From: Saccharolobus solfataricus P2
GTDB lineage: Archaea; Thermoproteota; Thermoprotei_A; Sulfolobales; Sulfolobaceae
Assembly (NCBI RefSeq): GCF_000007005.1
Contig: NC_002754.1
Strand: one strand, 5' to 3'
Length of the DNA stretch: 64,000 nt
Position numbers and translations under genes: made by a program. Each line of letters begins with the position of its first letter. The stretch's first letter is position 1. The notes under the pieces were generated by a model. It made no database searches. It had not been told where the DNA came from and saw nothing but the letters and a program-made list of their open reading frames with translations. Below are positions 20,897 through 62,251 of this stretch, piece after piece.

Positions 20897-21334
20897 ATTC
20901 TCCATAATACCACTTTCGCCAAATACTTCAATTGGGTAATAAAATTTTTGGAAGAAGATTTAAAAGTTGCGATATCTTCTCTTTTTCCAACATTCGGATC
21001 TTACGGTGAATTGAAAATAACTGAATACTTTATGTGATTTATACTAAATTAACAAAATTGTTGTCCACACTTAAGGGTGAGAGGGTAATATTTCTTTTAA
21101 AAAAGAACAAAGAACGAACCAGTTTCACTACTAGCGAGTCACTAATTCATGTTTACCTTTTGCTAGAAGAGTTTGGATGGATTCCAAAACAAGGAGATTC
21201 TAAAGTCTTAAAGGTTAAGAGAAAGATTTGTTATAACTTGAGGTTTATTGGATAAAATTACCAATAATATAGATTTTTATACTCTCTAGAAAGTTCCTAT
21301 TAACTTAAAATAGGTATATATTTAGGGTTAAAAT

Positions 21335-29879: not shown

Positions 29880-31378
29880 AACTTTATGCTATCATTTAAA
29901 AAAGTTTAGTATATACTAATTTTCTTAAATTAAACAATTTTACTTCTTATATCTTATTTAGCAATAGTATTAAATTAAATATAGCTTTTTTTGTATTGTC
30001 CCATATTTTTGTGTCAAATTAGTATCATGAAATCCCTCGATATGAAGAATCCAAGCTTATCTTCACCATTCTCCTATAAGGATATGTTAAAGATAATTCC
30101 TTGTGTGTTTGAAAAAATATCCTGCGGGCATTGTAATGTTGTCCTATCTATTACGTTAATCTTTTTAGGGAAAATATGGTTCAAAACACCTCTTGGCAGT
30201 CAATAATAAAAAATGAGTTAAGCGTTCCGTTGAACCACTTCTCGACATTACAAAATACTGAAAGCCTTGCCCCTTCTAGGGCAGTGAGAAATTAGCAGTG
30301 CACTGAAAACCATTAACGTTAGACTTTATCTTAATGGGGGTTAAGGGGGCGGAAGACCCTTCTGTAAGGGATGGATAGCCCCTTATATTTTAAATATTAA
30401 GAACTACAGATATACAATTAACGTCTGACGTAGGATTCCGCTTCCGCGCTTATACTAACGAACAAGCATTGAGGGCGTTAAAAGCCCAGTTGAGGCTAGC
30501 ATGTGAGGTATATAACACCCTACGTTGGGCAGACACCTATTTCTACCAAAGGGATGGGAAAGGACTTACACAGACGGAGTTAAGACAGATGGCCCTTGAC
30601 TTAAGAAAGCAGGATGAGGAGTACAAACAACTTCACTCACAAGTTGTTCAACAGATAGTAGATCGTTTTTACGAGGCTAAGAAGAGGTTTATGGACGGGC
30701 TAGCACGCTTTCCAAGAGAAAAGAAACCGCACAAGTACTACTCGCTAGTTTACTCTCAATCGGGATGGAAAGTGTTGAGCTTAAGGGAAATAAGAAGAAA
30801 GAGTAATCACAAGAAGAAGTTAATGAAGCTCTACCTATCTCATCTAGGAGTCTTCAACGTGATAGTACACAGGGACTTCCCTCTAGATAAGGTGAAGAGA
30901 ATCATAGTGAAGTTAGAGCCGTCTGGGAGAATATACATCATTTTCGTGGTTGATTACGAGTTCAAGGCCCTTCCATCTACTTGGAAAAGTTGTCGCGATC
31001 GACGTGGGAATTGAGAAACTCGTAACTACCTCCGATGGTCAGTATTTCCCTAACCTGAAGCCTTTTGAGAGGGCCTTAACCAAGGTAAGGGAACTTCATA
31101 GGTCTCTTTCGAGGAAGAGATTCCTCTCTCATAACTGGTTCAAAGCTAAGGTTAAGTTGGCTAGGGTTTATGAGCACGTGAAGAACTTGAGGAAAGATAT
31201 TTACATGAAGCTCGGTAAGTATTTTGCAGAATACTACGATATCGTGGTAATGGAGGATATTAGCGTTAAGAAGCTGGTTGGTAAGTCTCTCAAGGTGAGG
31301 AGGAGGCTTCACGATGTTGGTTTTTACGAGTTTAGGACGATACTGGAGTATCAACTAATAAAATACGGTAAGAAGTTC

Positions 31379-32817
31379 CAGTGGTGTTTCACCAATTTTA
31401 CTCAAAATGATACAATTTCTATGGAAGAGAAAAATATCAGAGCGGAGTTAGAAAAATCGGCTTATTTCAACACAAGAAGCAAAAAATTTTCATATTTGTT
31501 GAAGAAACTAACAGAAAACGAGTTTATATATAAAGAGTAATACCATTTGTCTAGTATTATCAATAGAGGAAAGTAGGTGGAAGGACGAGATGAACAAGAA
31601 AAGGTTAAAGCGAGGGACTCCATAACTCCGTTATGCAAACCATGATATTATCCAAAACGGAGCTGAAGTCCCTCGCTATAACTTTAGCAACAAACAATAT
31701 TAACGTTATCTCTCAAGATCTAGACCCGGAAATAGTGAAAGCAGCACCATCCTTGCTAACCGGAAACAGAGGAAAATACTACTTGAAGGTAGTAAGACGA
31801 GGCGAGAAAGTAATTAGTAAAGGTCAGAGAACCTTCAAGTTCTACCCAATCTACAGAGAAGTAAAGGGAGAGATCAACGTAGTCGCTGTAGATGAGACCG
31901 GATTAACCGTGGGAGAAAAGGAACAAGAAAAAGCAGAGGGCTTTCTACTCTACAACTGGAAGAGAAAAGGAGTAAAGATGAGATCCTTGGACCTCGTATA
32001 TCCCTTAAGGTTACCCCTCCTAGTGGAGGTAGCAGATTTGAGAAGCGACAGTCCATCACAGTTCCTACTCAGGAGCGTGAGGGAAGTAAGCCAATACATG
32101 GAAATAGATTACGTTGTAGCTGACGCCGGATTCTTGAACCTAGGGGTCATCAAGGAAATGCCCGTGAAGACCATTGTGAGAGGAAAGTCGAACTTGAAGG
32201 GATTCAAGGAACTATCTAACGTTCCATTAGTTGAGAAGAGATACGAGGTTAAGGACAAGGTTTACGTTGCGTATAGGGTCTTGGAATTTGAAGGGCTTTA
32301 TTATTACGATGTGGTTTACGTTAAGGGGAAGCCGAGGCACTTCATGTTCGTAACGAACTTCGAGGGAGATCCCTATGAACTGGCTGAACTCTATAGGTTG
32401 AGGTGGCAAGTTGAGGAGGGTTTTAAGGTTAGGAAGGCAAGGATAAGGTATGTTAGGAAGTTGAGTAATAAGATCTTCTTGTTCCTCTATTACACGGTTC
32501 TGGATTCTGCGTGGAATCTAGTGAATCATCTTCTCTTTAACTTCAAGTCCACGTGTAAGAAGGTTTTGTCCTTCGATTCATTCGTCAAGCTTCTCTAACT
32601 TTCTCGGTGTTCAGAGGAGACTATGCACGTCGTTTTCACCACGTGAGAAAAATTCAGAATTCTCCTCTTATTATTAGAATTGTACGCTATATTTTTTGCA
32701 AATTATTTTAACATGTTATGTTTCATAATAATTTTATTGTTTTTCTCTATATCAATCTCTTTTTGAAAGGACTAATATTATATCTTTCAAATGAAATAAT
32801 TTGGTGAAACACCACTG
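31379..32817 (+). mobile_element. ISC1439-type IS, intact
   Basis: Exactly 1439 bp; TIR CAGTGGTGTTTCACCAA; 9-bp TSD AAGAAGTTC. Confidence 0.95.
31633..32598 (+). CDS. DDE transposase (ISH3 family)
   Basis: AVDETG, VADAGF, RWQVEEGFK motifs; 321 aa. Confidence 0.92.
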   Translation: MQTMILSKTELKSLAITLATNNINVISQDLDPEIVKAAPSLLTGNRGKYYLKVVRRGEKVISKGQRTFKFYPIYREVKGEINVVAVDETGLTVGEKEQEKAEGFLLYNWKRKGVKMRSLDLVYPLRLPLLVEVADLRSDSPSQFLLRSVREVSQYMEIDYVVADAGFLNLGVIKEMPVKTIVRGKSNLKGFKELSNVPLVEKRYEVKDKVYVAYRVLEFEGLYYYDVVYVKGKPRHFMFVTNFEGDPYELAELYRLRWQVEEGFKVRKARIRYVRKLSNKIFLFLYYTVLDSAWNLVNHLLFNFKSTCKKVLSFDSFVKLL

Positions 32818-33104: not shown

Positions 33105-33938
33105 CTAACTTACCTTCTTCGGTATATCTCTCCCCAAGAAGTTTATTATGGATAAAACCAATGGAACAAGGGAATATACCACAATCGACACAATAGCTAA
33201 CCCCACATTATTACTTATGGAAGGCAGAATGTTCAGTCCCCTAGCTATTGTTGAGAATGGTGAGTTCTGTAGTAGCATAAATGGTAACTCAGTGGAACCC
33301 CACGTTGGTAGATACTCTGAAATCATCTCGTAGCTTCTATTGTTGGTTAATAAAGACACGAAGACGAGTACGTCAGATACTATTATTGAGGCTATTAAGA
33401 TGAATCCACTAATTGTAAAGGATAGATTACTCCTCCTCAGTATTTCACCTATTGCAAAGGCGATGTTTAGGAAGACTAATGTTGAGAATACTACTGAAGA
33501 GAAGAGCTCTGGTAATAGTATTAAATCACTTTGTACTCCAAAGAGAAGAGATGAAAGGACTAAGGCAAGCACTACCATGAATAGGTAAATAATTAAAAGT
33601 AAGGAGAATGAACCAAGCCACTTCTCCATAACAAATCTCAACCTAGTTATTGGTTTTGATATGAAATAATCTACTGTTCCTTGTTCATATTCTTCTGCCA
33701 TTGATCCAGAAGCTATCGATATTGCTAAGAAGTGTATTAGGAGGACTTGTGGTAATAGTACCCCAAGAGCCCATAAATAGGGAGATAGGGGAATTATTAA
33801 TGTCTTCAGTGACTTTGAAGGTACTAAATATATTGCTAAGTAAATGCCGAGTTCAAAGATGAACGTTATTATAGATAGTACTATGACCTTTTTCCTAGCT
33901 ATTGCCCTTCTCCACTCGTAAAGCATGATCTCAAACAT
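33105..33938 (-). CDS. ABC-2 type exporter permease
   Basis: About 6 TM; GSMAEEYEQGTVDYFISKPITR motif. Confidence 0.88.
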   Translation of the reverse strand: MFEIMLYEWRRAIARKKVIVLSIITFIFELGIYLAIYLVPSKSLKTLIIPLSPYLWALGVLLPQVLLIHFLAISIASGSMAEEYEQGTVDYFISKPITRLRFVMEKWLGSFSLLLIIYLFMVVLALVLSSLLFGVQSDLILLPELFSSVVFSTLVFLNIAFAIGEILRRSNLSFTISGFILIASIIVSDVLVFVSLLTNNRSYEMISEYLPTWGSTELPFMLLQNSPFSTIARGLNILPSISNNVGLAIVSIVVYSLVPLVLSIINFLGRDIPKKVS

Positions 33939-34824
33939 TTCCTAATGCCCTCATGTAAGCCTCTTCCAGGTTTAGGTCAATATAGAAACCCTTTACCTTA
34001 ACACCACTTGTAACCAAATCCTTTAACAATTCCTCTCTCCTATCCTCATTAAGTTTGGCTATTAATCTATTCCCATCGTTAAATATTCCTTTAACGTATT
34101 CTATCCCCTTTAGCACTCCCTCGGCCTTTTCAATTTCGTCCGTTTCTACTACTACTTGTATACCTAAAAACTCCTTAACCATATCCTCAACAGTACCACT
34201 AAAAACTATCTTCCCCTTATATATCATGAATATTCTATCAGATAGCTTCTTTACATCCTCTAACTCGTGAGATGTCATCAAAATGGATACGTTATCTTTT
34301 CTCTTCAACTTGTTTAGTAGCTCTCTTGTCTTCAGAGAAAAAATAGGGTCAATTCCCATGTTCGGCTCATCCATTATTAGAATAGAGGGATTCCCAAGCA
34401 AGGCTTCAGCAATTGCTATTCTCTGAACCATTCCCTTACTGTACTTAACTATGGGATTATTTGCGTAATTCTCCATTTCAACAAATTCCAAAACCCTATT
34501 CACCTCACTTTTGTCCACTCCCCTTATCTTAGCTGAAAGTTCTAGCACTTGCTTTCCAGTAAGAAATGGTGGGTAATTGGGAATTTCTTGAACGTAGCCG
34601 ACTTCCTTAAAGATTCTCTTACTCTTGAAAGGATTTTCCCCAAGTATTTGCACTTCTCCCCTATCTGGCTTCATGAGAGTGAGTAGGATTCGGATAAGTG
34701 TGGTTTTTCCCGCACCATTGGGGCCTATAAGTGAGACGAATTCCCTTTTCTTAACCTCTAATGAGACATTATCTAAGGCTATTTTATTGCCGTATTTCTT
34801 GACAATATTGCTTACAACGATCAT
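33931..34824 (-). CDS. ABC exporter ATP-binding protein
   Basis: GPNGAGKTT, YSKGMVQR, IMDEP, SH. Confidence 0.93.
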   Translation of the reverse strand: MIVVSNIVKKYGNKIALDNVSLEVKKREFVSLIGPNGAGKTTLIRILLTLMKPDRGEVQILGENPFKSKRIFKEVGYVQEIPNYPPFLTGKQVLELSAKIRGVDKSEVNRVLEFVEMENYANNPIVKYSKGMVQRIAIAEALLGNPSILIMDEPNMGIDPIFSLKTRELLNKLKRKDNVSILMTSHELEDVKKLSDRIFMIYKGKIVFSGTVEDMVKEFLGIQVVVETDEIEKAEGVLKGIEYVKGIFNDGNRLIAKLNEDRREELLKDLVTSGVKVKGFYIDLNLEEAYMRALGNV

Positions 34825-36136: not shown

Positions 36137-37788
<1,652 letters not shown>

Positions 37789-39090: not shown

Positions 39091-39469
39091 AAGAAATATT
39101 CATATAAGTGAGTTATAAACCTTACTATATACTATAAGATGGGAGAATCTCCTAGTAGCTAGAACTATTCAATTTGAATCATCACTACGTAGTATTTTTC
39201 ATCCTTCTCCTCTATTGTGAACAATAATTTTGTTAATTTAGTATTAAGTCATATACAGCATTAGCTTATTTTCAATTCAGCATACGATTTAGATGTTGAA
39301 AGAGGAAGAGAAAATCTAACAATTCTTAATCTTCATCAAAATTTTCGTTACACAGTTACTACTTAACGAGAGTGGTTTGAAGGAAGAATTTAAACTTAAA
39401 ATGAGAGAAACTGTTGTCCTCACTCTATGGTGTAAAAATTTTATTTATATAGAAAACTAATGATTATGT

Positions 39470-40642
39470 ATGAATTGGAAAGTAACAATAAAAAATACTA
39501 TTGAGGAATTAGCGAAGCTCAAAAAAGATGTTAAAATAGAGAACGAGGGAGATCCAGAACATGAACTATCTGATGCAGAAGATAAAGTTATGAAAATAGA
39601 GTTGGAGGAAGAGTTTAAGCCAACGATGTACTCCTTATACGAATTTAAATCACTTAACGATAAAAGAATAGCGTCAATAGACTCCTCATCAAGGTATTTG
39701 AGGGACTTCTCAGTTAACACATGTCTTATCGGTCTTTCAGTATATAGTAATAGAGAAGGTTTCATAGATGGTCCCTTTACTGTAGATATCCCATATATCG
39801 GAATCAGTAGTTATAGGGAAATATTGGAAAGCTTAAAAATTGATGACATTAACGTTAGGTACAAGAATGTAGTGAACTACTATTACGTTAACGAGCCTAA
39901 TAACGAATATAAAATCGACGATATTGCGGATGAGTTGAGATTAGAAGCGGAAAACGTTGGGCTTAAAAGGGTTATTCAGAACCACGATATAGTTATTATT
40001 GACGGTCCAATATACCCAACACCATTGGAGCTAACTGAGGAAATAAACTTAGAGACAGAAGCTAGGAGAAAGCATAGATTAGCTTATGCCAAGCTAGTAA
40101 ATGAGAGAATAGAATTACTAAACAATAACGTAATTGGAGTAGTGAAAAGATTAGAGAATTCAAAGAAGCTTTGGAGAGTTAAGGAAATTAATGAAACAAT
40201 AGGTAACGTTAAAAGGATGAAGGACGTAACGATTATTGAACTAATAGACGAGCGTCTTTGTAGGAAAAACTATGAGTACGTATGCACTATAGGCCCATTT
40301 AAAATTGAATATGCCCTAGAGGTTAAAGATGAAGATGGGAGAAATGTTATAGAAAAAGTTCCAACTAAGTACGCTTATTATGTCATCATTAGAAAAAAGT
40401 ACTTCCCACCAACTTTTCTGAGAATAGAGAGTACTAATAAGAACCTAGACATCTCTCCAGTTTTATCTAGACTAACGGAGAGACTAATGCCCACTTACAT
40501 TGAAATCGTTGATAGGAGAAGTAAGAGAATATCGGCATCACTCTTTTTATACGCATACGAGATTGCCTCCAATTACTTAAACATCATTCACGACGATAAA
40601 ATGGGCTACCTTAGCGTAATCTCACAGTTCACCTCTGAATAG
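39470..40642 (+). CDS. NurA-family nuclease (non-canonical paralog)
   Basis: IASIDSSS and VIIDGPI acidic motifs, GVVKR, C-terminal MPTYIEIVD; convergent with HerA. Confidence 0.75.
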
Positions 40643-42419
40643 TCTTTATGGGAACCTCACTGAAATATATGGAATACACTATGGCCAATCCCGGTGTTGC
40701 ATGCCTTAGAAAATCCTCATATTCCTCCAACCCTAATCTCCTCAGTACATGACTCTCATTTCTCATAACGACTTTAGTATTGGTAAGTTGAAGAACCAAG
40801 GGATTTAAGTCCTCGGGGACATGAGTGGCTAAAACTACCCCTATGTTCCTAACCCTACCTAGCCTCATTATCCTATTTATTAACCCCTCTACAATGTCCT
40901 TTGATACATTCTCTTGATCAGTCTGCGGGAAGTACTCGTGGGCTTCATCCATTATTACCAAAGTTAACTTAGTCGTCTCCTTCATCTTATATAGTTCATC
41001 CTTCCAGTTGAAGAAATCCTCTAGAAGCTTATACGCTATAGTGGCAACTGCCTCTATTGACGCTGATCTATTCATAACCCAACTTAAATCCACTACTACA
41101 TCACTATATGACGAAAAAACGTCTTTAGGCTTAAAGTCCACAGTACCGGGCACGGTGAAAATACCGTAACTATCATAAGCCTTTAAGGTTCTTAAAATGG
41201 CCTCTTTAGTCTGGTAGGGAACATCAAGGCGTTTCATAGCCTCTTCGAAAGCCTTCCCCATATTAATGGTCAACATCTTTTTACTCCCATCATAAGAGGA
41301 AAATTGTTTAGATTTAGATCCAGAGACCATCTTCAAATCGTAAAACCCGCTGATCTTTCCAAGTAGGGATCCCGGGGTTAGTCTATCTCGTAGGAAATCG
41401 CTTAGCTGATCTTCGTAAAAGGTCTGTTTCTTATCAGCTAGCTCATAAAGGTCATATCCAATTATTTCAAACATGTTATTCACAATGGCCTCCCAATACA
41501 TTGAAGCCTTTGGAGTGAAATACGGAGTAATCTTATTGAAATTTTTTAGAACAGAATAGAAGTTTATTGAATAGGGTATGAGGAATACCTCTGATCCATT
41601 ACATTCCTCTAAAACTCCATCCTCTTTAACGTCTAGTATATTATCACAATCATACCAATTGGCGAATTTTTCGGCGTGATCCTTTAGCGATATCGATCTT
41701 GAAGCCTCCTCAACTACTGGCATAATTACCGCAAATCCCCTTCTCTTTTCAATTAAGTAGTTAATGAAATCCCCTTGCCTATCGAAAATGAAAGTACCCT
41801 TATCGATTTCCTCACTGCTTATCATACTTTTTAACAAAGTAGTTTTTCCAGACCCAGTTGTGCCTAAAATTAACGTATGATGCCTTAGCGTATATTCGTC
41901 AAGTCTAACGCTAGCATCAGTCTCCTCTCCTCCTGAAAATATTTTGCCTATAGTTATGCCCCTACTTGGAATATTCAAGATCTTTTCTATTAAATCGTGG
42001 TTTGGAATGAAGACTGGACTTTGAGGATCAACTGGAGAAACTGGTGGTCTTATTTTTCCGTTCTCAATCTCAGCAATTGGCTTTAGCTCCACATAAGTTG
42101 TGGTAATAATGGTTGTTGGATCCTTAGGATAGCTCAATTCCCTAATTCCTAACTTAGATAGGGCATCAGCCCTTGTTATGGCACGAACTTGTCCTAAAAT
42201 TGTAACTGGCCTAGTTATACTTCTAATGGCTAAATATTGACCTTTCTTTACATCGGAGTTTAGATAATCCTCAAACGCTATATCAACACCAATCAACTCA
42301 TTATCCTTAAGGCTAACACTCTCAAATCTAGTTATTCTACCAATTAGTTTACCGAATTTTTTCGCATCTGCTTCAGCTTCGTTTAGTTTATCCCCTAACT
42401 TCTTTACTAACTCTTCCAC
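40629..42419 (-). CDS. HerA/FtsK-family ATPase (non-canonical paralog)
   Basis: HAS-barrel-like N-terminus, [39 protein letters not shown]. Confidence 0.88.
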
Positions 42420-42667
42420 AAATATAAAAAATGTAAGTGAAAAATTAAAGCATTTTCGTCTTCAAACTATAGATATGCTTAGTAGATCTGTTGAATATTT
42501 TTCCATTCAATTAATGATAAGATGTACAATTTATGTTTGCTATCTCTCTTAACTCTTAGTGGAAATTCAACAATTCCACAAGAAGCAGTGTAGATGAGGA
42601 AAAGGATCAAGAACTATAACTTTGTTCATGTCTTTATACATTTGACTCGTTTGTTTTCTTGAAACTA

Positions 42668-42861
42668 AATGTGAATGGCAATTTCATTCATTTCAGACTC
42701 AGTTTAAATTCTTCCGAACTACATTAGTTAAGTGCTTTAATTGTGTGACAAAATCCTTGGCAAATGGTTTAAAATTGTTACATCCTCTCCTCGTCAACAT
42801 CTAAATCTTATGTTAAATTGAAAAATAACGAATACCTTTTATGGCCGTTGTTTTACACACT
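42668..42861. mobile_element. MITE family X, uninterrupted eroded copy (194 bp)
   Basis: Colinear with 20200-20239 + 20897-21071; the empty TTTAA|ATTCT site is at 42703-42712. Confidence 0.65.
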
Positions 42862-42915
42862 CCTTAGAAATACTTTAGCCTTACCCTCTCTCTTTTTTGA
42901 AATATTTTCTTTGTC

Positions 42916-43023
42916 ATGATAATAAAGAAGATAAAGGGAGTAGTGGTGTCATTTCCTTCAGAGAGGATAATGAGGGAGATAGTAGAAGAGTTAAAGGAAG
43001 ATGAAAGCAAGAACAAGAAGTGA
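42916..43023 (+). CDS. Possible 35-aa protein
   Basis: MIIKKIKGVVVSFPSERIMREIVEELKEDESKNKK*; purine-rich, coding-like; convergent with McrB. Confidence 0.3.
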   Translation: MIIKKIKGVVVSFPSERIMREIVEELKEDESKNKK

Positions 43024-43033
43024 ATTAACTTTT

Positions 43034-44713
43034 TTATTGTCCTCCTTTTTCTTTTTTCCATTTTTCTATTAATCTATTAAATTTATTTATATTATCTGGA
43101 TTTAGTGTCCCTATAGTGGATCTTAAAACTTCAACGAACTTATATATATCAGAATTGTTGTCATCAAGACGGGAATATATATCCAGCGCTGTCTTTAAGC
43201 TAGCCGGTGAGATATTAAACTTTATTACCTTATCTTCTTTTTCATTTAGATTAACTCTAAGATATTTTACAAGATCCTTAACTTTATTCTTAAAGTCCTC
43301 ACTAAAAGAAGCGTAAGTTTTAAGAAATTCATCTAAATCTTCGGTTTCTTTCGGATAATCAAAGTAAATTATCACGAACCTTCTTGCCAGCGCATCTCCA
43401 ACATAAAACAGATTTCTAGCATCGACTAAGTTTATTGTAGCAATAATTCGTATTCTTTTTAATGGTTCATTCTCTCTACTCTCCCTCTTTAACTTCTCAT
43501 ATATTTCTAAGAAACTCTTGGTTACATTATCTATATTATCTCCATAACTCTTAATTTCCTCTATTAGAGCATTGGGAATTGACCATTCGCTAGGATATGG
43601 AGTAGAAAATATTGTCATTAATTCTCCAAATGCCTTATCAACGTCAGCCCTATTCAATTCATCAATTACGACGTAATAGTTCCCATCCTTTATTCTTGCA
43701 GCATTTACGTAAGCTTCAATGAAAAGCCCGCTCTTCCACATTACAGATCCCTCTCTTATACTTTCTCCTCCTATCAAATTCCTTCTAAACCAAAGTGAAT
43801 TGGCAGTAGCTACTTCATAACAGTTATCATTATTACCAGTTAAAGCTCTCACAGTCCTTATAGCTAAGCTAGTTTTTCCAGTACCAGGTGGGCCAGCTAG
43901 GAGTACATTAGTAGTTTGTAGAGCTTTCAGTATAATGTTAACTGAATCTTGAGGAATATAGAAACCATTAAGATCTATTTGTGCGTTTTTATTACAAACT
44001 ACTTCCTCTGATAGGTATTCTTTCTGAGTACTGAAACGAAACTTAGAATAAAATTCTAAAGTAGACCTAATTTCCTCTTTCTTCGATAGAATAAATTGTT
44101 GAAAAGCTTTAACTGCATCATTATTGTCTTCTGTATAGCATTGGTTTGATTGATTATTAACCCCTTCTAACTTATAATCTTCTCCCACCCATTTATTACT
44201 GTCATTATAGTTTTTTCTTATGCTTTCGTGAAGCCAAAATATTTTTATTCTAAATCTTACTATCCAGACTTTGTCACCTTCCTTCCATCCTTTAAAATTC
44301 CTCATCGCGTCCTTTGTGATATCCGTTACTACTCCGAATCCAATAATGCCTAGCTCTTTTGTTCTTAGAAGGGCTACCAGTATTTTATCGTTCTTAATTT
44401 CTATTTTATTTTTATTCTCTGTATCATTTTTCTTATCTTTTCTCTTCTTATCTTCTCCAAAATAGATTTCGTCATACCTGTTTAAAATGCTACTAATATT
44501 GCTACGATTTTCAGCCGAAGCACCCCATAAAGTATATCCTAATTCTCCATAAAAAGAATATTTTATAGATTCTACCCAATGAGATTTTTCACCTATAAAG
44601 AAGCAAGGAACAAAATTTCCTTTTTCAATATAATCGAGAAAAGTTTGCGCACTATCTTGAGAGTCTAGTAATTTTTTGAACTTGTCTCTGACTACTAACC
44701 AATCACCATACAC
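43034..44713 (-). CDS. McrB-family AAA+ GTPase with an EVE/PUA-like N-terminal domain
   Basis: GPPGTGKT, VIDELNRAD, McrB NxxD signature (INLVD), LARRF; N-terminal LWG...GIIGFGVV..D...W...RFRI. Confidence 0.85.
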   Translation of the reverse strand: MYGDWLVVRDKFKKLLDSQDSAQTFLDYIEKGNFVPCFFIGEKSHWVESIKYSFYGELGYTLWGASAENRSNISSILNRYDEIYFGEDKKRKDKKNDTENKNKIEIKNDKILVALLRTKELGIIGFGVVTDITKDAMRNFKGWKEGDKVWIVRFRIKIFWLHESIRKNYNDSNKWVGEDYKLEGVNNQSNQCYTEDNNDAVKAFQQFILSKKEEIRSTLEFYSKFRFSTQKEYLSEEVVCNKNAQIDLNGFYIPQDSVNIILKALQTTNVLLAGPPGTGKTSLAIRTVRALTGNNDNCYEVATANSLWFRRNLIGGESIREGSVMWKSGLFIEAYVNAARIKDGNYYVVIDELNRADVDKAFGELMTIFSTPYPSEWSIPNALIEEIKSYGDNIDNVTKSFLEIYEKLKRESRENEPLKRIRIIATINLVDARNLFYVGDALARRFVIIYFDYPKETEDLDEFLKTYASFSEDFKNKVKDLVKYLRVNLNEKEDKVIKFNISPASLKTALDIYSRLDDNNSDIYKFVEVLRSTIGTLNPDNINKFNRLIEKWKKEKGGQ

Positions 44714-44737
44714 AAAAAAGGGTAGGTAGTCTTGTAT

Positions 44738-45943
44738 TTAAATGTGTTCTTTCATTATCTTATCGATCTTCGATAAATTATTTTCATCTGACTCCAAAGG
44801 ATCGATGATAATCATATATAATAAATGACTATTATACCAAAAGTCTAGTATTCCGCTTTTTGCTCTGGCAATCCCATCCAATTCCATTGTAGCCTCATCT
44901 TCGTTATCGAAGTTAATTTGTTTAATTTCCAATCCAGGATAAACTAATACTGCTAATGAAGGATCATATTCATAAGTATAAGCCATAATTTTGAATCTAC
45001 CCATTGTAATATAACTAACTTTAGATGAGTACTTACATTCAAAGATAATCGGCCTTTCGTTAACAAGAGAAATATCCGGTCTTCCCTTATATTTCTCTAT
45101 ATCCTCTATATAATCAACCTTTCTTAGAGAGGATTGGCTAAGTGAGGCATTAAATATTATACTTAACCTCCTATTACCTCTTATAGCTATATATTTCTCT
45201 TCCTCCTTCTTTATTTCATAACCTTTAGATTCAAGGTAATTTACTACTAAGTAGAATACATAAAGCTCATATAATTTCCACATGATGAATTTTATTAATT
45301 TCTTGTTTATAGGCCTCTTGGGTGTCCTTATCCCTACCTTAATTTCCTCTAATTCTTTAGCCGTATAATACGCTTTGTATGCTCGTAATAACCAATCTGG
45401 GTCAGTATAGGACGGATCTCTAAAATAACCATCCGGAAATTCCTCCTTGATTTTATCGAGCTGAGAAAAAGTCTGGTCGAAATCATCCAAAAAATTAAAG
45501 TAACGAGGTACTTGTTCTTTTCTTACTTCAATTTTACTTCGTTTTTCCTTAATAATGGAATAAATTCTTCTCGTAATATAGCCTAAGATTCCATATTCTG
45601 GAGCATTATATCCCTCGGTAAAGCTATGATAGGCTACCAAACCCATAGAGTATACCGGAATACTTAGGTCTACATTCAACTCACCATAAAGGTCATTGGA
45701 GTATTCAATTGAAAATTCTCTATAGGTTAATCTACTCTTTTTTGCATCCTCTGCAGATCTTACTACACTAGCTGTTATTAAGTACATAAGGTAATAATAA
45801 ATATATGATAGTGTATAGTCATCTAGAGGGACTTCCTCAGTTCCATTAAAAGTTGAGAGCAACTTTTCAACATCTAAGATCCCCTTATATTGTAGATAAT
45901 AACTTCCAACCTTTTTTAGAAGCGCCCTATCTCTCCTATTCAC
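44738..45943 (-). CDS. McrC-like PD-(D/E)xK nuclease
   Basis: LYELYV, RPDISL, IFECKY, MAY motifs; directly upstream of McrB. Confidence 0.75.
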   Translation of the reverse strand: MNRRDRALLKKVGSYYLQYKGILDVEKLLSTFNGTEEVPLDDYTLSYIYYYLMYLITASVVRSAEDAKKSRLTYREFSIEYSNDLYGELNVDLSIPVYSMGLVAYHSFTEGYNAPEYGILGYITRRIYSIIKEKRSKIEVRKEQVPRYFNFLDDFDQTFSQLDKIKEEFPDGYFRDPSYTDPDWLLRAYKAYYTAKELEEIKVGIRTPKRPINKKLIKFIMWKLYELYVFYLVVNYLESKGYEIKKEEEKYIAIRGNRRLSIIFNASLSQSSLRKVDYIEDIEKYKGRPDISLVNERPIIFECKYSSKVSYITMGRFKIMAYTYEYDPSLAVLVYPGLEIKQINFDNEDEATMELDGIARAKSGILDFWYNSHLLYMIIIDPLESDENNLSKIDKIMKEHI

Positions 45944-46387
45944 ATAAACTAATATGTTCTGGAATATTTAACCATAGATTCCTAAGTCATCATAAGTATG
46001 AATAACAATTTTATTAATTCAGTACAAATCATATGAAGTGTTAATTCATCTTCAATTTAACGTATGATTCAAATGTTGAAAAGAGAAGAGGAGGCAATTT
46101 TTAATTCTTTTTCAAAAATTTTATTACATAACTAAAGTATCTGATAAATGTGGCATTAGAGAAATTTAAACTTAGTTTCAAATGCATGAAATCGTTATCC
46201 ATTCTTAGGATTAGAAAAGTATTACAAACTTAAATTGAACATTTTTACATAAATTGAAAGGAACATAACAGTAGTGTGGTGGTAAAAAACAACTGATCGA
46301 TAAATCAGTATTCTTAAGAACGGTTTTATGTTTACGATGTTACTGGTTATTATTTCCAAGCAAGTCTTAATAAAGGGAAAAAATTAT

Positions 46388-46426
46388 AACTTCTGGGGCA
46401 GAAGTTGAATTCTGGGGCAGAAGTTG
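46388..46426. promoter_or_regulatory. Tandem palindrome AACTTCTG-GGG-CAGAAGTT (19-bp period) at an ATPase start
   Basis: Perfect IR at 46388-46406 plus a one-mismatch copy that overlaps the TTG start at 46424. Confidence 0.5.
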
Positions 46427-47484
46427 CTATTTGATGAAAGGCCTAAAGAAAACAGAGAAGACTTGTTTGATAGGGAAAAAGAGATTAAAGAAATAATGAG
46501 TAACATTAACAGGCCTTTGATTTTAATCACTGGAGTCCGAAGAATAGGTAAAACATCAGTATTAAAAGTCGCACTTAATGAGATAAAAATACCCCATGTC
46601 ATAATAGATTGTAGAAACTTACGCCCTAACTACAGTAGAGGGGATCTATACTCACTATTCTCTAACGCTTTTTCATCAAAACTATCCACCTTCCTTGACG
46701 TGCTAAGTAAGATAAGAGGGGTTAGCATTTTAGGTAACAGCGTTGAACTAAAATGGAAGGGTAGAGAATACGTCAGTTTATCAGATCTTTTTGATCATTT
46801 GAACGAGAAAAGGATAGTAATAGGGATTGACGAAGCTCAAAAATTGAGGGGACCATTATCAAATGAAATAAAAGAAGCTATTGCTCATGCTTACGATTAT
46901 GACAAAAACTAACCTTTATTTTAACGGGCTCTGAGGTGGGACTACTTCATGACTTTTTAGGAGTAGAGGACCCCGGGTCACCGCTCTATGGTAGATACTA
47001 TTTCGAGATAACGTTAGAAAGGTTTGATAAAGAAAAGAGTAGGCAGTTTTTAAGAAAGGGTTTCGAGGAGTTATCATTAAAGGTCGAGGAGAATGTAATA
47101 CAAGATATCATCGCAATGGTTGATGGTATCCCGGGATGGTTAACTTTAGCAGGTAATCAATATTTCAATAATAGGGATTTGAAAAGAGTAAAGGATCTGG
47201 CAATAAACGTTGCTTTGAACGAAATTAACAGCTTGATCTCGGTTAAAAATAACGTCTCTCCCATTGTAGCAAAACGTTACAGAACAGTCCTAAGGTGTAT
47301 AGCTAAGGGAATGAATAGTTGGAGTAAGATACTCAATTGTGTACAAAATGAGGAAGGTAGTACAATTTCCACTAGTGTTCTTAGTAACATTCTAAATACT
47401 TTGAAGAAATTGAGCATCATCGACGAAAATTACCGATTTTTAGACCCAGTTTATAAGGAAGCGTCTAGGATGCTTAGAAATTAA
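46424..47484 (+). pseudogene. Archaeal ATPase (ATPase_2/wHTH), single frameshift near 46905
   Basis: GVRRIGKTS, IGIDEAQ; the reading frame shifts in ...YDKN|LTFILTGSEVG. Confidence 0.85.
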
Positions 47485-47659: not shown

Positions 47660-48786
47660 TAAAAGCCTTGCCCTTCTAGGGGCTGGGATGAAAGTCTAAA
47701 TACACCCTTTCTTCTTAAAATATTTCGTGGCTAGGAGGAGGGGTAAGAAAAACCCAATCAGAGCTACTGTTGCAATGAAGATTGGCCTCACTCAATCTCT
47801 CCTAGACCTATCAAACAACTATGTTAAGCATTAAGGTATTTGTTATTCTGGTTGAAAGAAAAAGGGGTGAATCATAACCAGAACAAGAAGAAACTCCTCG
47901 ATTTAGTCCACCAAAGTGTTGGCGAACTACCAATATTGGTTATCCCAGAAACTTAAAGGAGTACTTGAACTGGAGAATGAAGGAAACTAAGCTTGTTATT
48001 AAAGGTGATGAGGCATACCTTAAAGTCGTTTTTGAGAAGGAAAGGGAAGAGATAATACCAAAGGAGAGTGTAGCAGTAGATATAATATGGATGACGTTGT
48101 AGTTGGGAAAGACGATGTTAAATACGTTAGGATCCCAACTAGACTGGCTGAGGCTCATCATTGGAAGTCATTAGCTGAGTCCCTACAAAGAAAGTATTCA
48201 AGGAGGTGGAGGAGTAATAGAGAGATTCTATTGAGGATTCGTTCTTTTCATTTGAAGGCTAGGAGGATTATGGAGGATTTTGCAAGGAAAGTTGGTAAGT
48301 GGGTTGTTGATGAAGCCAAAAGGATGGGTGCTAATGTGGTTAAGTTAGAGAGGTTAACTAATATGATTAAACGTTAGTGCTTTCAGAAAGTTTATAGCTT
48401 TAGGCAAAGGATATACCACTAGATCATAGTCTAAGAACTTTTCCAAAATACTAGTGTGAGGAACCTTTCGTCGGGGTTTAGGGATCGTCTCTATTTAATG
48501 CCGTATCGCCGTGTTCAGTATTGGGTTGAGTGGGAGGCAATGAAGTGTGGTCTTCTAGTAGAATTCGTTAACCCTAAGTGTTCTTCTGTCCTATGCCCTA
48601 AGTTTGGGAAAAAATGGAGGAAAGCGTACATCGTTGATTTCATTGTTCTTGTGGTTATGAGAATGATCGTGATGTTATTGCTGTAGTTAATCTTAATGGG
48701 AGGGGGTCTCTGACTCTCTTGACTGCTCCTCAGATGAGACCCGAATCGATAAGGGGAACCGCCATTTATGGCGTTGAGAAAGTCAG
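47660..48786 (+). pseudogene. Degraded IS200/IS605 tnpB element
   Basis: Fragments [35 protein letters not shown]; hairpin left end; ends AAAGTCAG. Confidence 0.75.
48375..48453. mobile_element. 79-bp MITE (SM1-like) inside the tnpB pseudogene
   Basis: Exact reverse complement of 6840-6918; flanked by GT/GT; removal restores IKRVRNLS. Confidence 0.85.
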
Positions 48787-49247: not shown

Positions 49248-51062
49248 ATGCCATTACCAGTAATACTACATGAAACTACTCAAGTTAAAGATTTAGTTAC
49301 TGCATATAGGGAAACGTTTAATGAATATCCTTCTGTTGAACAAGAAAACACGTGGAGAAGGCTCTTAGATATACTTAAAGGCCTTAATATATCTCATCCT
49401 ATAATCATGGAATATCCAATATTTACAGAAAGAGTTGACACTATCTTTGTAGATAAAAATAGAGCCTTAGTAGTTGAGGCTAAGGGTTGGAAGAAAGTAG
49501 AACGAATAGATGATCTCACTATTAAGGCTGATGGAGAGCTTCACTTAGATCCATGTTATCAACTAAACAACTATGTGACTAAATTAAACACTTTCCACTC
49601 CTCAAGTATAAAATTTGATGGTACGCTCTTCCTTTATAACACTATGGACTATTCCTCCTCGGAATGTGAAGTGTTAAGAAACCCTAATGATCTGAAGAAG
49701 AAACTTGATAACTATTCGCCGGGAGGCATACAAGATGCTGACAAAATAGTAAACGGGAAGTTTGTATTAACCAAGGACTTCATTAAATTTGTTGCTGAAG
49801 TAAAAGAACATTTAAAAGGGAACGTGGCTAAGGCAATTTTACCTTATGGTTTTGGTCTAACAGAGGAACAAGGTTTAATCTTAAGCAAAGTTTTGAAAGC
49901 TCTTGAAGATAAAGATGTGAAGAAGAACTTTCTTATAAGAGGTGGTAGTGGGTCTGGTAAGAGCTTATTAGCCGTGACTATCTTCCTTGAAGCGTTTAGT
50001 AGGGGCTATTTCACTATCTTATCTTATGTGAATCAAAGATTACTAAATACCATAAGATTACTACTAGGTGGAAGTGAAAGGAAACGTAAAGAAGGTAATA
50101 TTTACAGAAGTAAAGCACAAGCTTTATCCCAGTTTATTATGTTTTACTCGACGGGTTATGGTTTCGGAGTGGGAGAGGAGAAGTTCCCGGAGTGGTTTAA
50201 GAAAACCTTTGAAAGAGATGTAGACGATATAGACTTAATCGTATTTGACGAAGCCCAAAGGATGAATGTTAACGTAATAAAAAATTCTTCAAGAGGAAGG
50301 GTTAACGTGTATTTTTATGACGACTCTCAGATATTATTAGGAGATGAAGAGGGGACTGAAGAGACCTTTAAAAAGTATCTTACCAACGTGGAAGAATACC
50401 AATTATCCTCATCTATAAGGGTACCAAAGGATTATATAGAGGCAGTGAAAGGCTTACTTGAAGGGAGGAAAGTTACGGTAAGGGGCTATGATTTTAGGAT
50501 CTTCAATGATGTAATGAGTATGATAAATGAATTAAAGAAAAGGAAAGACGAGGGCAGAAAAGTGGCGTTAATATGCAGCTTCACGGAATCTGTGGGTGAT
50601 AAGAAAAATAAGACAAAGTGGACTTTAGAAAACATAAGGATAGGGTATCCGTTACAATCTGGTTTCGATCTTTACAAGAATACCAGTTTAAGGGTTAAGT
50701 GGCTTATGGATGAGAAAACTGAATATCCTAAATACTGGAGAGGAGAATTAGATCCCCTACAATACTGTGCCTCAGTATATGGTGCGCAGGGATTTGAGGC
50801 AGATTATGTGGGAGTTGTATGGGGAAGAGACATGATATGGAGGGATAGTTGGACCGTCAATCCAGACCTTACACCTATTACGGATTATGTGGGTGGAAGG
50901 GATTCCTTAAAAAAAGTGTTAAAAAGACACAAAACAAAGGCGCTTAAACTACTAAAGAATAGATATTACATTATGTTAACCAGAGGGATAAGAGGAGTTT
51001 ATCTCTTCTTCGAGGACCGTCAAACTGGTGAGAAAGTAGATGAATTAGTTGAGGTTATGTAG
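49248..51062 (+). CDS. Nuclease-DUF2075 (Schlafen group-3-like SF1 helicase) fusion
   Basis: N-terminal E..RVD..VVEAKGW nuclease motif; GGSGSGKS, VFDEAQR, YGAQGFEADY, YIMLTRG. Confidence 0.85.
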   Translation: MPLPVILHETTQVKDLVTAYRETFNEYPSVEQENTWRRLLDILKGLNISHPIIMEYPIFTERVDTIFVDKNRALVVEAKGWKKVERIDDLTIKADGELHLDPCYQLNNYVTKLNTFHSSSIKFDGTLFLYNTMDYSSSECEVLRNPNDLKKKLDNYSPGGIQDADKIVNGKFVLTKDFIKFVAEVKEHLKGNVAKAILPYGFGLTEEQGLILSKVLKALEDKDVKKNFLIRGGSGSGKSLLAVTIFLEAFSRGYFTILSYVNQRLLNTIRLLLGGSERKRKEGNIYRSKAQALSQFIMFYSTGYGFGVGEEKFPEWFKKTFERDVDDIDLIVFDEAQRMNVNVIKNSSRGRVNVYFYDDSQILLGDEEGTEETFKKYLTNVEEYQLSSSIRVPKDYIEAVKGLLEGRKVTVRGYDFRIFNDVMSMINELKKRKDEGRKVALICSFTESVGDKKNKTKWTLENIRIGYPLQSGFDLYKNTSLRVKWLMDEKTEYPKYWRGELDPLQYCASVYGAQGFEADYVGVVWGRDMIWRDSWTVNPDLTPITDYVGGRDSLKKVLKRHKTKALKLLKNRYYIMLTRGIRGVYLFFEDRQTGEKVDELVEVM

Positions 51063-57069: not shown

Positions 57070-57648
57070 ATGCTAAGATCAAAGGAAGCATGCCAAAGAC
57101 TAGGAATATCCTATGCAACACTTAGAGAATACGTTAAGAAAGGATACATAAAACCAGTTATACTACAGAGCGGAAAATGGAGATTCAGAGAAGAAGACGT
57201 AGAGAGGCTAATGGGAATTATTAGAAAAAGAAAAGTAATACTTTACGCCAGAGTATCATCTTCCACACAAAAAGACGATCTGGCAAACCAAGTGAAATAT
57301 CTAGAGGAACAAGTCAAAGAATACGACCAAGTAATCACAGACATAGGTTCCGGGTTAAACATGAAGAGAAAGGGGTTCTTGAAGTTGTTGAGAATGATAT
57401 TAAATAACGAAGTATCACGCGTAGTTATTGCTTACCCAGACAGACTTGTTAGATTCGGCTTCGAAATCCTGGAGGAAGTGTGCAAAGCACATGGCTGTGA
57501 AATAGTAGTAATAAACCAAGAGGACAAAGAAGAAGAATTGGTCGAAGACTTAGTCTCAATACTACTCTCATTCAGTGGGAAACTACATGGCATGAGAAGT
57601 CATAAATACGAGAAGGTGAAGAAATGTGCTGAAGAACTTAAGGCTTAA
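57070..57648 (+). CDS. tnpA: IS607 serine recombinase TnpA
   Basis: N-terminal MerR-like HTH, YARVSS, DIGSG, DRLVRFG. Confidence 0.93.
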   Translation: MLRSKEACQRLGISYATLREYVKKGYIKPVILQSGKWRFREEDVERLMGIIRKRKVILYARVSSSTQKDDLANQVKYLEEQVKEYDQVITDIGSGLNMKRKGFLKLLRMILNNEVSRVVIAYPDRLVRFGFEILEEVCKAHGCEIVVINQEDKEEELVEDLVSILLSFSGKLHGMRSHKYEKVKKCAEELKA

Positions 57649-58897
57649 GTCATTCCAACCAGAGGAAGAGTACGTGCACTTCACGTACTCCATCAAGAAC
57701 GACAAGAGGGAGGAGAGCAAAGAATTAATTAAAGAATACACAACACTACTACAGAAAGCAATTGACTACCTGTGGAGTTTAACGAAAATACAAGTAAGAA
57801 AGAACGGTAATTACAAGATAACACTACCGAAGAAGAAGGAGGTGTACAAACCACTTAGGGATGAACTAGAGAAGATCAACCACCTTGCATCACACTACGT
57901 CGATAAGGCAATTAATGACGCATTCTCGATCTTGAAGTCGTGGAGGAAAAGGGCTATAAAGGGGAGAGCTTCGATTGAAAAACCAAGGGTGAAGAAGGCT
58001 TACGTTAGGATAAAGACGACTCTGAGGAAGGTTGTGGGGGAAAGCGTTAGAATAACGGTAAGACCTTATGAGTACATCACCTTCTCGTGGAGTAAGTCAT
58101 GGTTCTCAAGAAGGGTTAGGGAGTTGGAACTTGGTGAACCTATAATTAAGGAGGAGAAAGTGTATTTGCCATTTCGTTACAAGTTACCCTGGGCAACACC
58201 ATTAAACTTTCTGGCAATTGACTCCAACCTTTATACTCTAGATGCTTATGATGGTGAGAAATTCGTTACAATCTCACTAAAGCAGTTGTACTCCCTTAAG
58301 TACTCTATGGAGGTGAAGAGGGCTAAGGTGCAATCATTTGCATCAAAGCACACGAAGAGGGGGAGAGAGTTGTTAAGGAAGTATTCGCATAGGGAGAGGA
58401 ATCGCGTTCTGGACTTCGTTCACAAGTTTGTAAACGCGTTGTTGGACTTGTACCCCATGACGTTTTTCGCTGTGGAAAAGCTTAACAAAGAGAGTATGTT
58501 TGTAGACGCTAATGACTCTCTTTCGAGGAAGATTTCTAGGACTGTTTGGAGGAGTATACACAGAGTGTTGAAGTATAAGGCTCCGCTTTACGGTTCTTTC
58601 GTTAAGGAAGTGAACCCACGCTTTACATCTAGGTCTTGCCCCAGATGTGGGTTTGTATCCCGAAAGGTTGGTAAGACCTTTGAGTGTGAGAGGTGTGGGT
58701 TTAAGTTGGATAGGCAATTGAACGCGTCACTGAATATTTATCTCAAGATGTGCGGATTCCCTCACATCCGTGATATAGCACGGGTGTGGGTTGGGGTTAT
58801 TCCGCTAATGGGGCGAAGAGGGATGAACGGGTTTCCCCGTGACTTTGGTGAAGCCCAAGGGCTGAGGATTGATATTAAATATCATGAAATCCCATGA
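57626..58897 (+). CDS. tnpB: TnpB (IS607-associated), RuvC-III Asp replaced by Gln
   Basis: LAIDSN, AVEKL, TSRSCPRC..CERC, LDRQLNASLNI. Confidence 0.88.
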   Translation: MLKNLRLKSFQPEEEYVHFTYSIKNDKREESKELIKEYTTLLQKAIDYLWSLTKIQVRKNGNYKITLPKKKEVYKPLRDELEKINHLASHYVDKAINDAFSILKSWRKRAIKGRASIEKPRVKKAYVRIKTTLRKVVGESVRITVRPYEYITFSWSKSWFSRRVRELELGEPIIKEEKVYLPFRYKLPWATPLNFLAIDSNLYTLDAYDGEKFVTISLKQLYSLKYSMEVKRAKVQSFASKHTKRGRELLRKYSHRERNRVLDFVHKFVNALLDLYPMTFFAVEKLNKESMFVDANDSLSRKISRTVWRSIHRVLKYKAPLYGSFVKEVNPRFTSRSCPRCGFVSRKVGKTFECERCGFKLDRQLNASLNIYLKMCGFPHIRDIARVWVGVIPLMGRRGMNGFPRDFGEAQGLRIDIKYHEIP

Positions 58898-60940: not shown

Positions 60941-62251
60941 AACAGACGGGGGTTCAAAGGGGGCGGAAAACTTCTCTTTGAGGCGGATCCCTTTGTAGAA
61001 AAGTTAAAATAGGAAAATAACGAAATACACATCAATGCCCACCTTAGGGTTTCGCTTCCGTGCATACACTGACGAACAAACCCTTAGGGCGTTAAAGGCC
61101 CAGTTGAAGTTAGCGTGCAAAATCTACAACACCTTAAGGTGGGCAGACATATACTTTTACCAAAGGGATGGGAAAGGACTTACGCAGACTGAGTTAAGAC
61201 AGTTGGCTCTAGATCTGAGAAAACAAGATGATGAGTATAAGCAACTCTATTCTCAAGTAGTTCAACAAATAGCCGACCGTTACTACGAAGCTAGACAGAG
61301 GTTTTTTGAAGGTTTAGCACGTTTCCCGAAAGAAAAGAAACCTCACAAATACTACTCCCTTGTCTATCCCCAGTATGGTTGGAAAATACTTCACGTTAGA
61401 GAAATAAGAAAAGGAAGCAAGAAGAAACTAATAACGCTTAAACTATCAAATCTTGGTACATTCAAGGTAATAGTTCACCGAGACTTTCCCCTTGACAAAG
61501 TAAAGAGGGTAGTAGTGAAGCTAACAAGATCTGAGAGGATATACATCACTTTCGTAGTTGATCACGAATTCCCCAAGTTACCTAACACTGGTAAGGTAGT
61601 GGCGATAGATGTTGGTGTAGAAAAGTTGTTAGTAACGTCAGATGGTGAGTATTTTCCTAATTTGAGACCTTACGAGAAAGCGTTATGGAAAGTGAAGCAT
61701 CTACACAGAGAACTTTCAAGGAAGAAGTTCCTCTCTAATAATTGGTTTAAGGCTAAGGTTAAGCTTGCTAGGGCTTATGAGTATTTGAAGAATCTAAGAA
61801 CGGATCTTTACATGAAGTTGGGTAAATGGTTTGCTGAGCATTATGACGTTGTGGTGATGGAGGGTATTCACGCTAAACAGCTTGTGGGTAAGTCCTTGAG
61901 GTCTCTGAGGAGGAGGCTGAGTGATGTGGGATTTGGTGAGTTGAGGGGTGTGCTGAAGTATCAGCTGGAAAAATACGGTAAGAAACTCATCCTAGTTAAT
62001 CCTGCATACACTTCCAAAACTTGTGCTAGGTGCGGGTATGTGAAAAATGACTTGTCTCTATCTGATCGTGTTTTCGTTTGTCCCAACTGTGGTTGGATTG
62101 CAGATCGTGACTATAATGCTTCTCTTAACATCTTACGTGGATCGGGGTCGGAGCGACCCTTAGTGCCTGTGGAGCTCCGCCCTCTACCAGTACTCTGGCA
62201 AGGTGGGGCTATGAAGCAGGAAGCTCCCTCATTTATGAGGGGGTAGCTCAC
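60941..62251 (+). mobile_element. IS200/IS605 tnpB-only element (ISC1316-like, 1311 bp)
   Basis: Inserted after CTTAT with no TSD; right end GGGGTAGCTCAC; boundaries from rejoining the synthetase. Confidence 0.88.
61035..62246 (+). CDS. tnpB: TnpB RNA-guided nuclease, intact
   Basis: AIDVG, VMEG and DRDYNA (D-E-D intact); CxxC...CxxC zinc finger. Confidence 0.93.

Follow-up and report, generated by a model that had tools for sequence, protein, structure and literature searches.

A McrBC-type restriction pair and a HerA-NurA pair adjoin each other in Saccharolobus solfataricus, probably as independent modules

Four genes located between positions 39470 and 45943 of a 64-kb stretch of DNA from Saccharolobus solfataricus P2 (contig NC_002754.1; the whole stretch of 64,000 nucleotides is called the window) were proposed, in a sequence-only reading, to form one defence system in which a cutter of modified DNA is coupled to a dedicated resection machine. 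The analysis reported here points to another organisation. With a probability of about 0.8, the locus consists of two independent two-gene modules, a McrBC-type restriction pair and a HerA-NurA pair, which neighbour each other in the S. solfataricus lineage and hardly anywhere else. The four-gene coupling is unsupported because the two modules are separable across genomes and because one of them was deleted in the strain Sulfolobus sp. E5-1-F. A single operon is impossible since nurA is convergent.

The four long open reading frames (ORFs) were each found to be uninterrupted, and the earlier description of their arrangement was correct. Three of them run in the same direction on the minus strand: a mcrC-like gene (44738-45943, 401 amino acids, identified by fold and context), a mcrB-like gene (43034-44713, 559 amino acids, AAA_5 domain) and a herA paralogue (40629-42419, 596 amino acids, FtsK/HerA-type hexameric ATPase with a DUF87 domain). 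The nurA paralogue (39470-40642, 390 amino acids, Pfam NurA PF09376) is encoded on the plus strand, and its 3' end shares 14 bp with that of herA (40629-40642). The mcrC-like ORF ends 24 bp before the start of the mcrB-like gene, and 614 bp separate herA from mcrB.

The distribution of both pairs in other genomes was examined from each side. For HerA-centred loci, homologues of McrB and McrC were searched by tblastn within 8-10 kb. The matches listed for the HerA profile in the genome collection were mostly distant Thermoproteota and unrelated bacterial P-loop proteins, and the Sulfolobales loci were retrieved individually. Among the matches listed, none of the approximately 30 HerA loci outside S. 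solfataricus had either of them. These include the HerA-NurA loci of S. islandicus REY15A and HVE10/4, S. tengchongensis, A. hospitalis and S. javensis, as well as about 20 further ones from Thermoproteota (Desulfurococcales and Acidilobales). The suggested co-occurrence of this HerA/NurA clade with McrBC thus failed at every other locus examined. Starting from McrCB, no HerA-NurA pair was found beside it in five other genomes carrying it (S. shibatae B12, Acidianus HS-5, M. sedula, S. islandicus LAL14/1 and Sulfolobus sp. E5-1-F), nor in 35 of the 36 informative metagenomic loci, defined as mcrC-mcrB pairs with at least 4 kb of flanking sequence.

The closest relative, Sulfolobus sp. E5-1-F, was the most instructive. 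Its McrC and McrB are 91% and 85% identical to those of the window. Colinearity extends to either side of the locus, where thiC, the ketol-acid reductoisomerase gene and the same gene for a 203-amino acid protein come after mcrC-mcrB. It lacks window positions 39513-42585, a deletion of 3073 bp. The nurA promoter and about the first 45 nt of nurA are retained, and the other breakpoint lies 166 bp upstream of herA. The deletion removed exactly the herA-nurA module and left mcrCB intact. Recombination between copies of a dispersed repeat found in the locus was considered as its cause and rejected, as the endpoints (39512 and 42586) lie about 100 bp outside the copies. The two modules also differ in GC content, with 32.3% for mcrB and 32.7% for mcrC, 38.7% for herA and 35.0% for nurA, and around 40% for the housekeeping neighbours. 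That genes lie side by side in a single genome says little about whether they form a multi-gene system, and here the clean deletion in a close relative settled the question.

The 401-amino acid protein gave no match in Pfam (also at E<=5), NCBIfam or PADLOC, nor in the PDB when searched with phmmer. Identification by sequence models was given up, and structure prediction followed by a fold search was needed instead. Across 23 homologues, a PD-(D/E)xK motif (G287-R-P-D290 ... E302-C-K304-Y-S) is invariant. It belongs to a predicted C-terminal nuclease domain, supported by motif and fold, which covers residues ~240-401 (44741-45226, minus strand). When a profile of the family was searched against PDB sequences, only the Cas4 nuclease 4ic1 was matched, weakly, in an alignment spanning this motif. 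The AlphaFold model reached a predicted local distance difference test (pLDDT) value of 82.3; its N-terminal part is helical, and a beta-hairpin region at residues ~74-110 is of low confidence. In a Foldseek search of this model against the PDB, the top matches were McrC chains, namely 6hz4_M from E. coli (8.4e-7), 6ut7_G from T. gammatolerans (7.9e-6), 7vsr_M and 6ut6_G, with Can2 and type II/restriction enzymes ranking behind them. The alignments to McrC span about 400 columns with a probability of 1.0, yet the template modelling (TM) scores are only 0.28-0.35. These low values are likely due to a flexible arrangement of the domains together with the poorly modelled hairpin.

Further indications came from the family and its context. 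Two remote full-length relatives showed sub-threshold matches to DUF2357, the N-terminal domain of McrC (7.5e-4 and 1.3e-3). A McrB homologue adjoins the 401-amino acid protein or its homologue in the window, in five of five other genomes and in 64 of 80 metagenomic loci. The family comprises 130 clusters at 50% identity among 1.84 billion protein representatives. All homologues are annotated as 'hypothetical protein', and all those with a named source belong to Sulfolobales or other Thermoproteota. Taken together, the invariant PD-(D/E)xK motif, the fold match of the model and the adjacency to McrB identify the protein, at the level of a predicted structure, as a divergent McrC; it would represent a branch of McrC that is so far unannotated. 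The label 'mcrC-like' given from the DNA alone is therefore upheld by fold and context, while sequence models do not see the protein.

The 559-amino acid protein was more easily assigned. It matched AAA_5 (PF07728) at 1.6e-12, and the NCBIfam McrB model PRK11331 at 6.3e-16, which is under the equivalog cut-off of that model. Sequence matches in the PDB were E. coli McrB (6hz4_A, 2e-14, and 6ut6_A, 5.9e-14) and T. gammatolerans McrB (6ut3, 6e-5), and several homologues carry the NCBI name 'McrB family protein'. The AAA+ GTPase motor, delineated by the AAA_5 match, covers residues ~247-516 (43166-43975, minus strand). In 25 homologues, the Walker A motif (GPPGTGKT), the Walker B residues D351-E352 and the signature N354-R355-A356-D357 are all invariant; the latter corresponds to the NxxD signature of McrB which follows Walker B, as defined in PMC11090510. 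By sequence, the protein can be assigned to the McrB-family GTPases, and the McrB side of the pair is thus a recognised family member.

The N-terminal domain of this protein (residues ~1-230, 44018-44713, minus strand) is predicted from its fold to be a YTH-like reader. No Pfam match was obtained for residues 1-237, even at E<=5 and with EVE (PF01878) included. The domain is conserved and has six invariant aromatic residues (W46, Y52, W63, F140, W143 and W150), and its AlphaFold model has a pLDDT of 88.7 and a predicted TM-score of 0.87. All of the best 50 Foldseek matches to the PDB were YTH domains (among them YTHDF2, Mmi1 and YTHDC1), the best with an E value of 4e-4 and a probability of ~1.0, and with target TM-scores of up to 0.60. 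EVE proper was ruled out, as there was no match to PF01878 and the top 50 PDB folds were all YTH. Judged by the model, the domain is YTH-like within the PUA-like superfamily; the former description of the McrB as EVE-like was right at the superfamily level and wrong for EVE proper. The N-terminal domain of the solved T. gammatolerans McrB is likewise YTH-like.

Compared to the McrBC systems of T. gammatolerans (6ut5/6ut7) and E. coli (6hz4, 6ut6), the pair of the window has in common the AAA_5 GTPase with its Walker A, Walker B and NxxD motifs, a predicted N-terminal reader of modified bases from the PUA/YTH superfamily, and the adjacency of the gene for a McrC-like fold with a C-terminal PD-(D/E)xK domain. 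It differs in that the divergence of the McrC-like protein puts it out of reach of the Pfam McrBC/DUF2357, NCBIfam and PADLOC models, and in that the gene order and even the strand vary within this McrCB family. Loci with mcrB first (31) outnumber those with mcrC first (17), divergent (14) or convergent (6) genes. The order 'mcrC first', which had been emphasised as the reverse of E. coli, is thus real in the window, but it is one of four arrangements in the family and nothing special. In the loci L078-L157, 20 have mcrB and mcrC on opposite strands, and in these groups the tblastn match to the McrB of the window often covers the AAA+ part only (~320 amino acids), which hints at other N-terminal reader domains.

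Both proteins of the second module were recognised by their sequence. NurA matched PF09376 at 2.3e-39 over profile positions 2-254 of 254 and the PADLOC model 'Type III coevolved' NurA (PDLC01056) at 4.3e-12. Its motifs around D71 (IDSS) and D178-G-P are invariant in five relatives, with identities down to 30%. HerA showed DUF87 (6e-11, central domain) and HerA_C matches in Pfam, and its best profile match was the PADLOC model 'Type III coevolved' HerA (PDLC01055) at 1.1e-48. Both PADLOC models go back to the type III CRISPR-associated clusters 57 and 58 described by Shah et al. 2018 (PMC6546367). The Walker motifs of HerA are invariant, including the Walker B sequence DEAH. The PADLOC check that had been suggested with the original proposal thus returned HerA and NurA, and left the 401-amino acid McrC-like protein unmatched.

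The HerA of the window is not an orthologue of the repair enzyme. Against the NCBIfam equivalogs of canonical HerA it scored 46 and 36 bits, the cut-offs being 970 and 800, and neither mre11 nor rad50 is nearby; it was ruled out as a repair orthologue on these grounds, which agrees with the earlier statement that the locus is not the housekeeping repair operon. When the HerA family profile was searched against the PDB, the anti-phage HerAs 9c1m, 8xau and 8wiv outranked the S. solfataricus repair HerA 4d2i, which was matched at 3e-9. The pair shares with the canonical mre11-rad50-herA-nurA operon (HerA 4d2i) the HerA/DUF87 ATPase and the neighbouring NurA nuclease with conserved motifs, whereas in the window the two genes are convergent with overlapping 3' ends and do not form an operon. 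With the bacterial defence systems Sir2-HerA and DUF4297-HerA (8xau, 8wiv, 9c1m), which are the top PDB profile matches, it has in common a HerA-family ATPase combined with a nuclease-type effector. In contrast to these, the effector here is NurA, and the similarity is weak (E values from 1e-12 to 1e-18) and lies mainly in the C-terminal ATPase part. From sequence comparison, the pair is best described as a non-canonical paralogue of the archaeal end-resection helicase-nuclease. The identifications made in the sequence-only reading hold in this respect: a McrBC-type, putatively modification-dependent pair with a predicted PUA-superfamily reader stands next to a HerA-NurA pair outside the mre11-rad50 operon.

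Homologues of this HerA with 36-73% identity are present in Saccharolobus, Acidianus, Sulfurisphaera, Stygiolobus and S. acidocaldarius. A NurA relative adjoins the HerA relative in every Sulfolobales locus examined, and the two genes are convergent in all those that were read. The 3' ends of the genes share 14 bp in A. hospitalis, 44 bp in S. javensis and 20 bp in the metagenomic locus L087, and in S. islandicus and S. tengchongensis they are separated by a short gap. Some loci of Desulfurococcales have both genes on one strand, with nurA first. The pair occupies different genomic sites in different genera. S. islandicus REY15A harbours a further DUF87/HerA-like ATPase of 550 amino acids (L161, 19382-20759) about 14 kb from the HerA-NurA relative, and several HerA/NurA paralogues are listed in PMC5587795; the family is therefore multi-copy in these genomes.

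By analogy with characterised systems, module 1 (43034-45943, minus strand, mcrC then mcrB) is most likely a type IV, modification-dependent McrBC restriction system. Judging from its family, the YTH-like N-terminal domain of the McrB-like protein would read a modified base, for which N6-methyladenine is our best guess by analogy with YTH domains and with Thermococcus gammatolerans McrB. The AAA+ domain would assemble into a GTP-bound hexamer. Docked in this ring, the McrC-like protein would act both as a stimulator of GTP hydrolysis and translocation and, by its putative PD-(D/E)xK site (D290, E302 and K304), as the nuclease. In module 2 (39470-42419), which has a separate evolutionary history and a predicted promoter region of its own, a HerA hexamer and a NurA dimer presumably unwind and digest DNA from its ends.

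Some observations weigh against the view of two independent modules. The common ancestor of S. solfataricus and E5-1-F already had both modules adjacent. A second, independent adjacency is found in L087 (5897-12902), where convergent genes for a HerA of 518 and a NurA of 333 amino acids lie 1.5 kb upstream of mcrC-mcrB; this could reflect defence-island clustering or some synergy. The L087 proteins are only 31% (HerA) and 26% (NurA) identical to those of the window, and the order of the modules differs. Because L087 carries a distant HerA-NurA clade beside mcrC-mcrB, the adjacency must have arisen at least twice. The assignment of McrC leans on a modelled fold with low TM-scores and on context, in place of a match to a sequence family. 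Finally, short contigs are frequent among the metagenomic ones, and the census covers a sample of loci, in which the HerA matches of the genome collection are covered only as far as they were listed. Still, two adjacencies in about 40 informative loci fit with defence-island clustering or chance, and do not demonstrate any dependence.

The four-gene system proposed initially, in which McrBC would cut modified invader DNA and HerA-NurA would resect it, either to destroy it or to feed CRISPR adaptation, appears very improbable. It has in its favour that all four genes are adjacent in S. solfataricus strains, that this adjacency is older than the split from E5-1-F, that L087 offers a second case with a distant HerA-NurA clade, and that known defence systems pair HerA ATPases with effectors, as seen in the PDB matches. 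NurA-HerA as supplier of fragments for adaptation is a published model for S. islandicus, where it concerns other paralogues (PMC5587795). However, across genomes neither module depends on the other, mcrCB has stayed intact in E5-1-F after the loss of herA-nurA, and in the window the modules differ in GC content and are set apart by a repeat-bearing gap of 614 bp and by the convergent orientation of nurA. The claim of a cutter coupled to its own resection machine was accordingly abandoned. A weaker form of it would be a facultative synergy and no obligate system, where the non-canonical HerA-NurA pairs of Sulfolobales, as stand-alone defence modules, settle recurrently next to YTH-McrBC and boost restriction: after an initial cut of modified viral DNA by McrBC, the ends so created would be the starting points for its degradation by HerA-NurA. 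The adjacencies in S. solfataricus and L087, with different clades and different orders, would be the trace of such synergy; we consider this quite unlikely. Somewhat less unlikely, though still doubtful, is a three-component system in which the functional partner of McrCB is not HerA-NurA but a Schlafen/Nhi-like helicase. Such a helicase is a commoner neighbour of McrCB than HerA-NurA. Its distance from mcrCB is 0.5-4 kb in S. shibatae, Acidianus HS-5 and S. islandicus LAL14/1, in the last case directly downstream and co-directional, and also in 5 of the 36 informative metagenomic pairs; in the window, the distance to mcrC is 3.3 kb. M. sedula and E5-1-F, however, have mcrCB without an adjoining helicase, the distance and orientation of the helicase relative to mcrCB vary, the Acidianus copy is just 26% identical, and on several metagenomic contigs the helicase is in fragments or frameshifted pieces where mcrCB is intact.

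If the two modules are independent, the role of HerA-NurA has to be considered on its own, and here an accessory or defence-type nuclease-helicase seems to us the likelier reading, ahead of a part in housekeeping repair. That the pair is a stand-alone module against viruses or plasmids, which adjoins McrBC by clustering in a defence island and without mechanistic coupling, is a real possibility, held tentatively and at somewhat less than even odds. Its neighbours in the window are McrBC, the Nhi/Schlafen-like helicase and a STAND-like ATPase, and genes at 43-51 kb give defence-type matches. The far better fit of HerA to the type III-associated model than to the canonical repair models, and the higher rank of anti-phage HerAs over the repair HerA, point in the same direction, as do the dispensability of the pair seen in E5-1-F, its varying sites among genera and its location beside McrCB in two configurations that are unrelated. 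On the other hand, the neighbours of HerA-NurA are metabolic and not defence genes in S. islandicus, S. tengchongensis and S. javensis, and the broad conservation of the pair in Sulfolobales is compatible with a role in cellular DNA metabolism, too. An action in trans as accessory of type III CRISPR-Cas is suggested by the PADLOC models, 'Type III coevolved' HerA and NurA being the best-scoring ones for both proteins. Unlike these type III-associated proteins, those studied here have no type III cassette or array near the loci in the window, S. islandicus, S. tengchongensis and S. javensis; a cas gene and a CRISPR array are missing from the whole window, and the surroundings of the relatives were free of cas genes as well, over 8-15 kb in S. 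islandicus REY15A (the 15 kb being to one side) and over 8 kb in both S. tengchongensis and S. javensis. The type III role is hence rated as improbable. The weight which remains beyond the accessory or defence role and the type III role is given to a function of HerA-NurA in cellular DNA metabolism.

A literature search retrieved no paper on a McrBC-HerA-NurA system or focused on the Sulfolobales McrC family, and the main text of the McrBC census PMC11090510 mentions neither NurA nor Sulfolobales. With module 1, Sulfolobales would gain a concrete type IV restriction system, whose nuclease subunit has so far been annotated as 'hypothetical' and missed by Pfam, NCBIfam and PADLOC, and which may influence transformation efficiency and the host range of viruses. 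Regarding module 2, a conserved convergent HerA-NurA paralogue without an assigned role is a gap in annotation. This paralogue, though of a familiar type, is unstudied, and the four-gene system proposed for it is not supported.

The spacer between mcrB and herA (42420-43033, 614 bp, GC content of 30.5%) contains one copy of a dispersed repeat of ~140-200 bp. Four copies with a mean identity of ~70% are present in the window, at 20890-21073, at 39216-39396 (plus strand, between thiC and nurA), at 42681-42824 (within the spacer) and at 45993-46192 (plus strand, upstream of mcrC). The latter three border the nurA-herA and mcrB-mcrC modules; they are intergenic and alternate in their orientation. 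In the set of fetched loci, S. solfataricus and E5-1-F were the only ones to show the repeat, which could be an old miniature inverted-repeat transposable element (MITE) or a shared regulatory element. The gap of about 600 bp with a MITE, as it had been described, is hence accurate in size and in containing a repeat copy, whereas terminal inverted repeats or target duplications were not established. An A/T-rich, TATA-like element, TTTAATTT, was read 23-30 nt upstream of the herA start; TTTAATTT would be at the position expected for an archaeal TATA box if the herA mRNA is leaderless.

The ORFs flanking the four-gene block are housekeeping or mobile/accessory genes: thiC, ketol-acid reductoisomerase, an ABC transporter, insertion sequence (IS) elements, isocitrate lyase and malate synthase. 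Neither mre11 nor rad50 was found within the 64-kb window, which is also devoid of cas genes, CRISPR arrays and tRNAs, and an Rfam scan of the whole window gave no family at threshold. The Schlafen group 3/DUF2075-type helicase is encoded at 49248-51062 (plus strand, 604 amino acids) and is a candidate defence gene, with matches to SLFN-g3_helicase in Pfam (1.1e-72) and to AbiO (1.2e-13) and Nhi (1.3e-13) in PADLOC. Copies beside McrCB were located in L068 (14297-16093), L069 (12311-14188) and L158 (10181-11971), and also in L082, L089 and L097.

Next to mcrC and outside both modules lies a frameshifted gene of the archaeal ATPase_2/MCM-wHTH type (46424-47484, plus strand), of which the ATPase_2 and MCM_C matches in Pfam are divided between two ORFs. 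A comparison with S. solfataricus P1 (LT549890.1, 1.237-1.259 Mb), to which the window is 99.98% identical across 21.7 kb, revealed a deletion of 1 nt at ~46909; the P1 copy is intact and codes for 353 amino acids. The gene is thus a strain-specific pseudogene. The remaining differences from P1 in these 21.7 kb are only three substitutions (34342, 34360 and 34363), all of which fall into one 22-bp segment of the ABC-transporter ATPase gene (33931-34824).

The 203-amino acid protein encoded beside ketol-acid reductoisomerase (36137-36748), of which the gene is kept in S. solfataricus and E5-1-F, was matched weakly by PF10108, the family of PolB-like 3'-5' exonucleases. A 692-amino acid ORF (8576-10654) has no Pfam match and contains an internal tandem duplication of 333 bp (8745-9385; 1.9 copies, 90% identity). 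Genes and remnants of mobile elements are plentiful (30469-31540, 31633-32598, 48087-48686, 57070-58897 and 61035-62246); they comprise TnpB/OrfB fragments, a DDE transposase, a pair of IS607-type resolvase and TnpB, and another TnpB. This abundance fits with the rearranged synteny of the region compared to S. islandicus.

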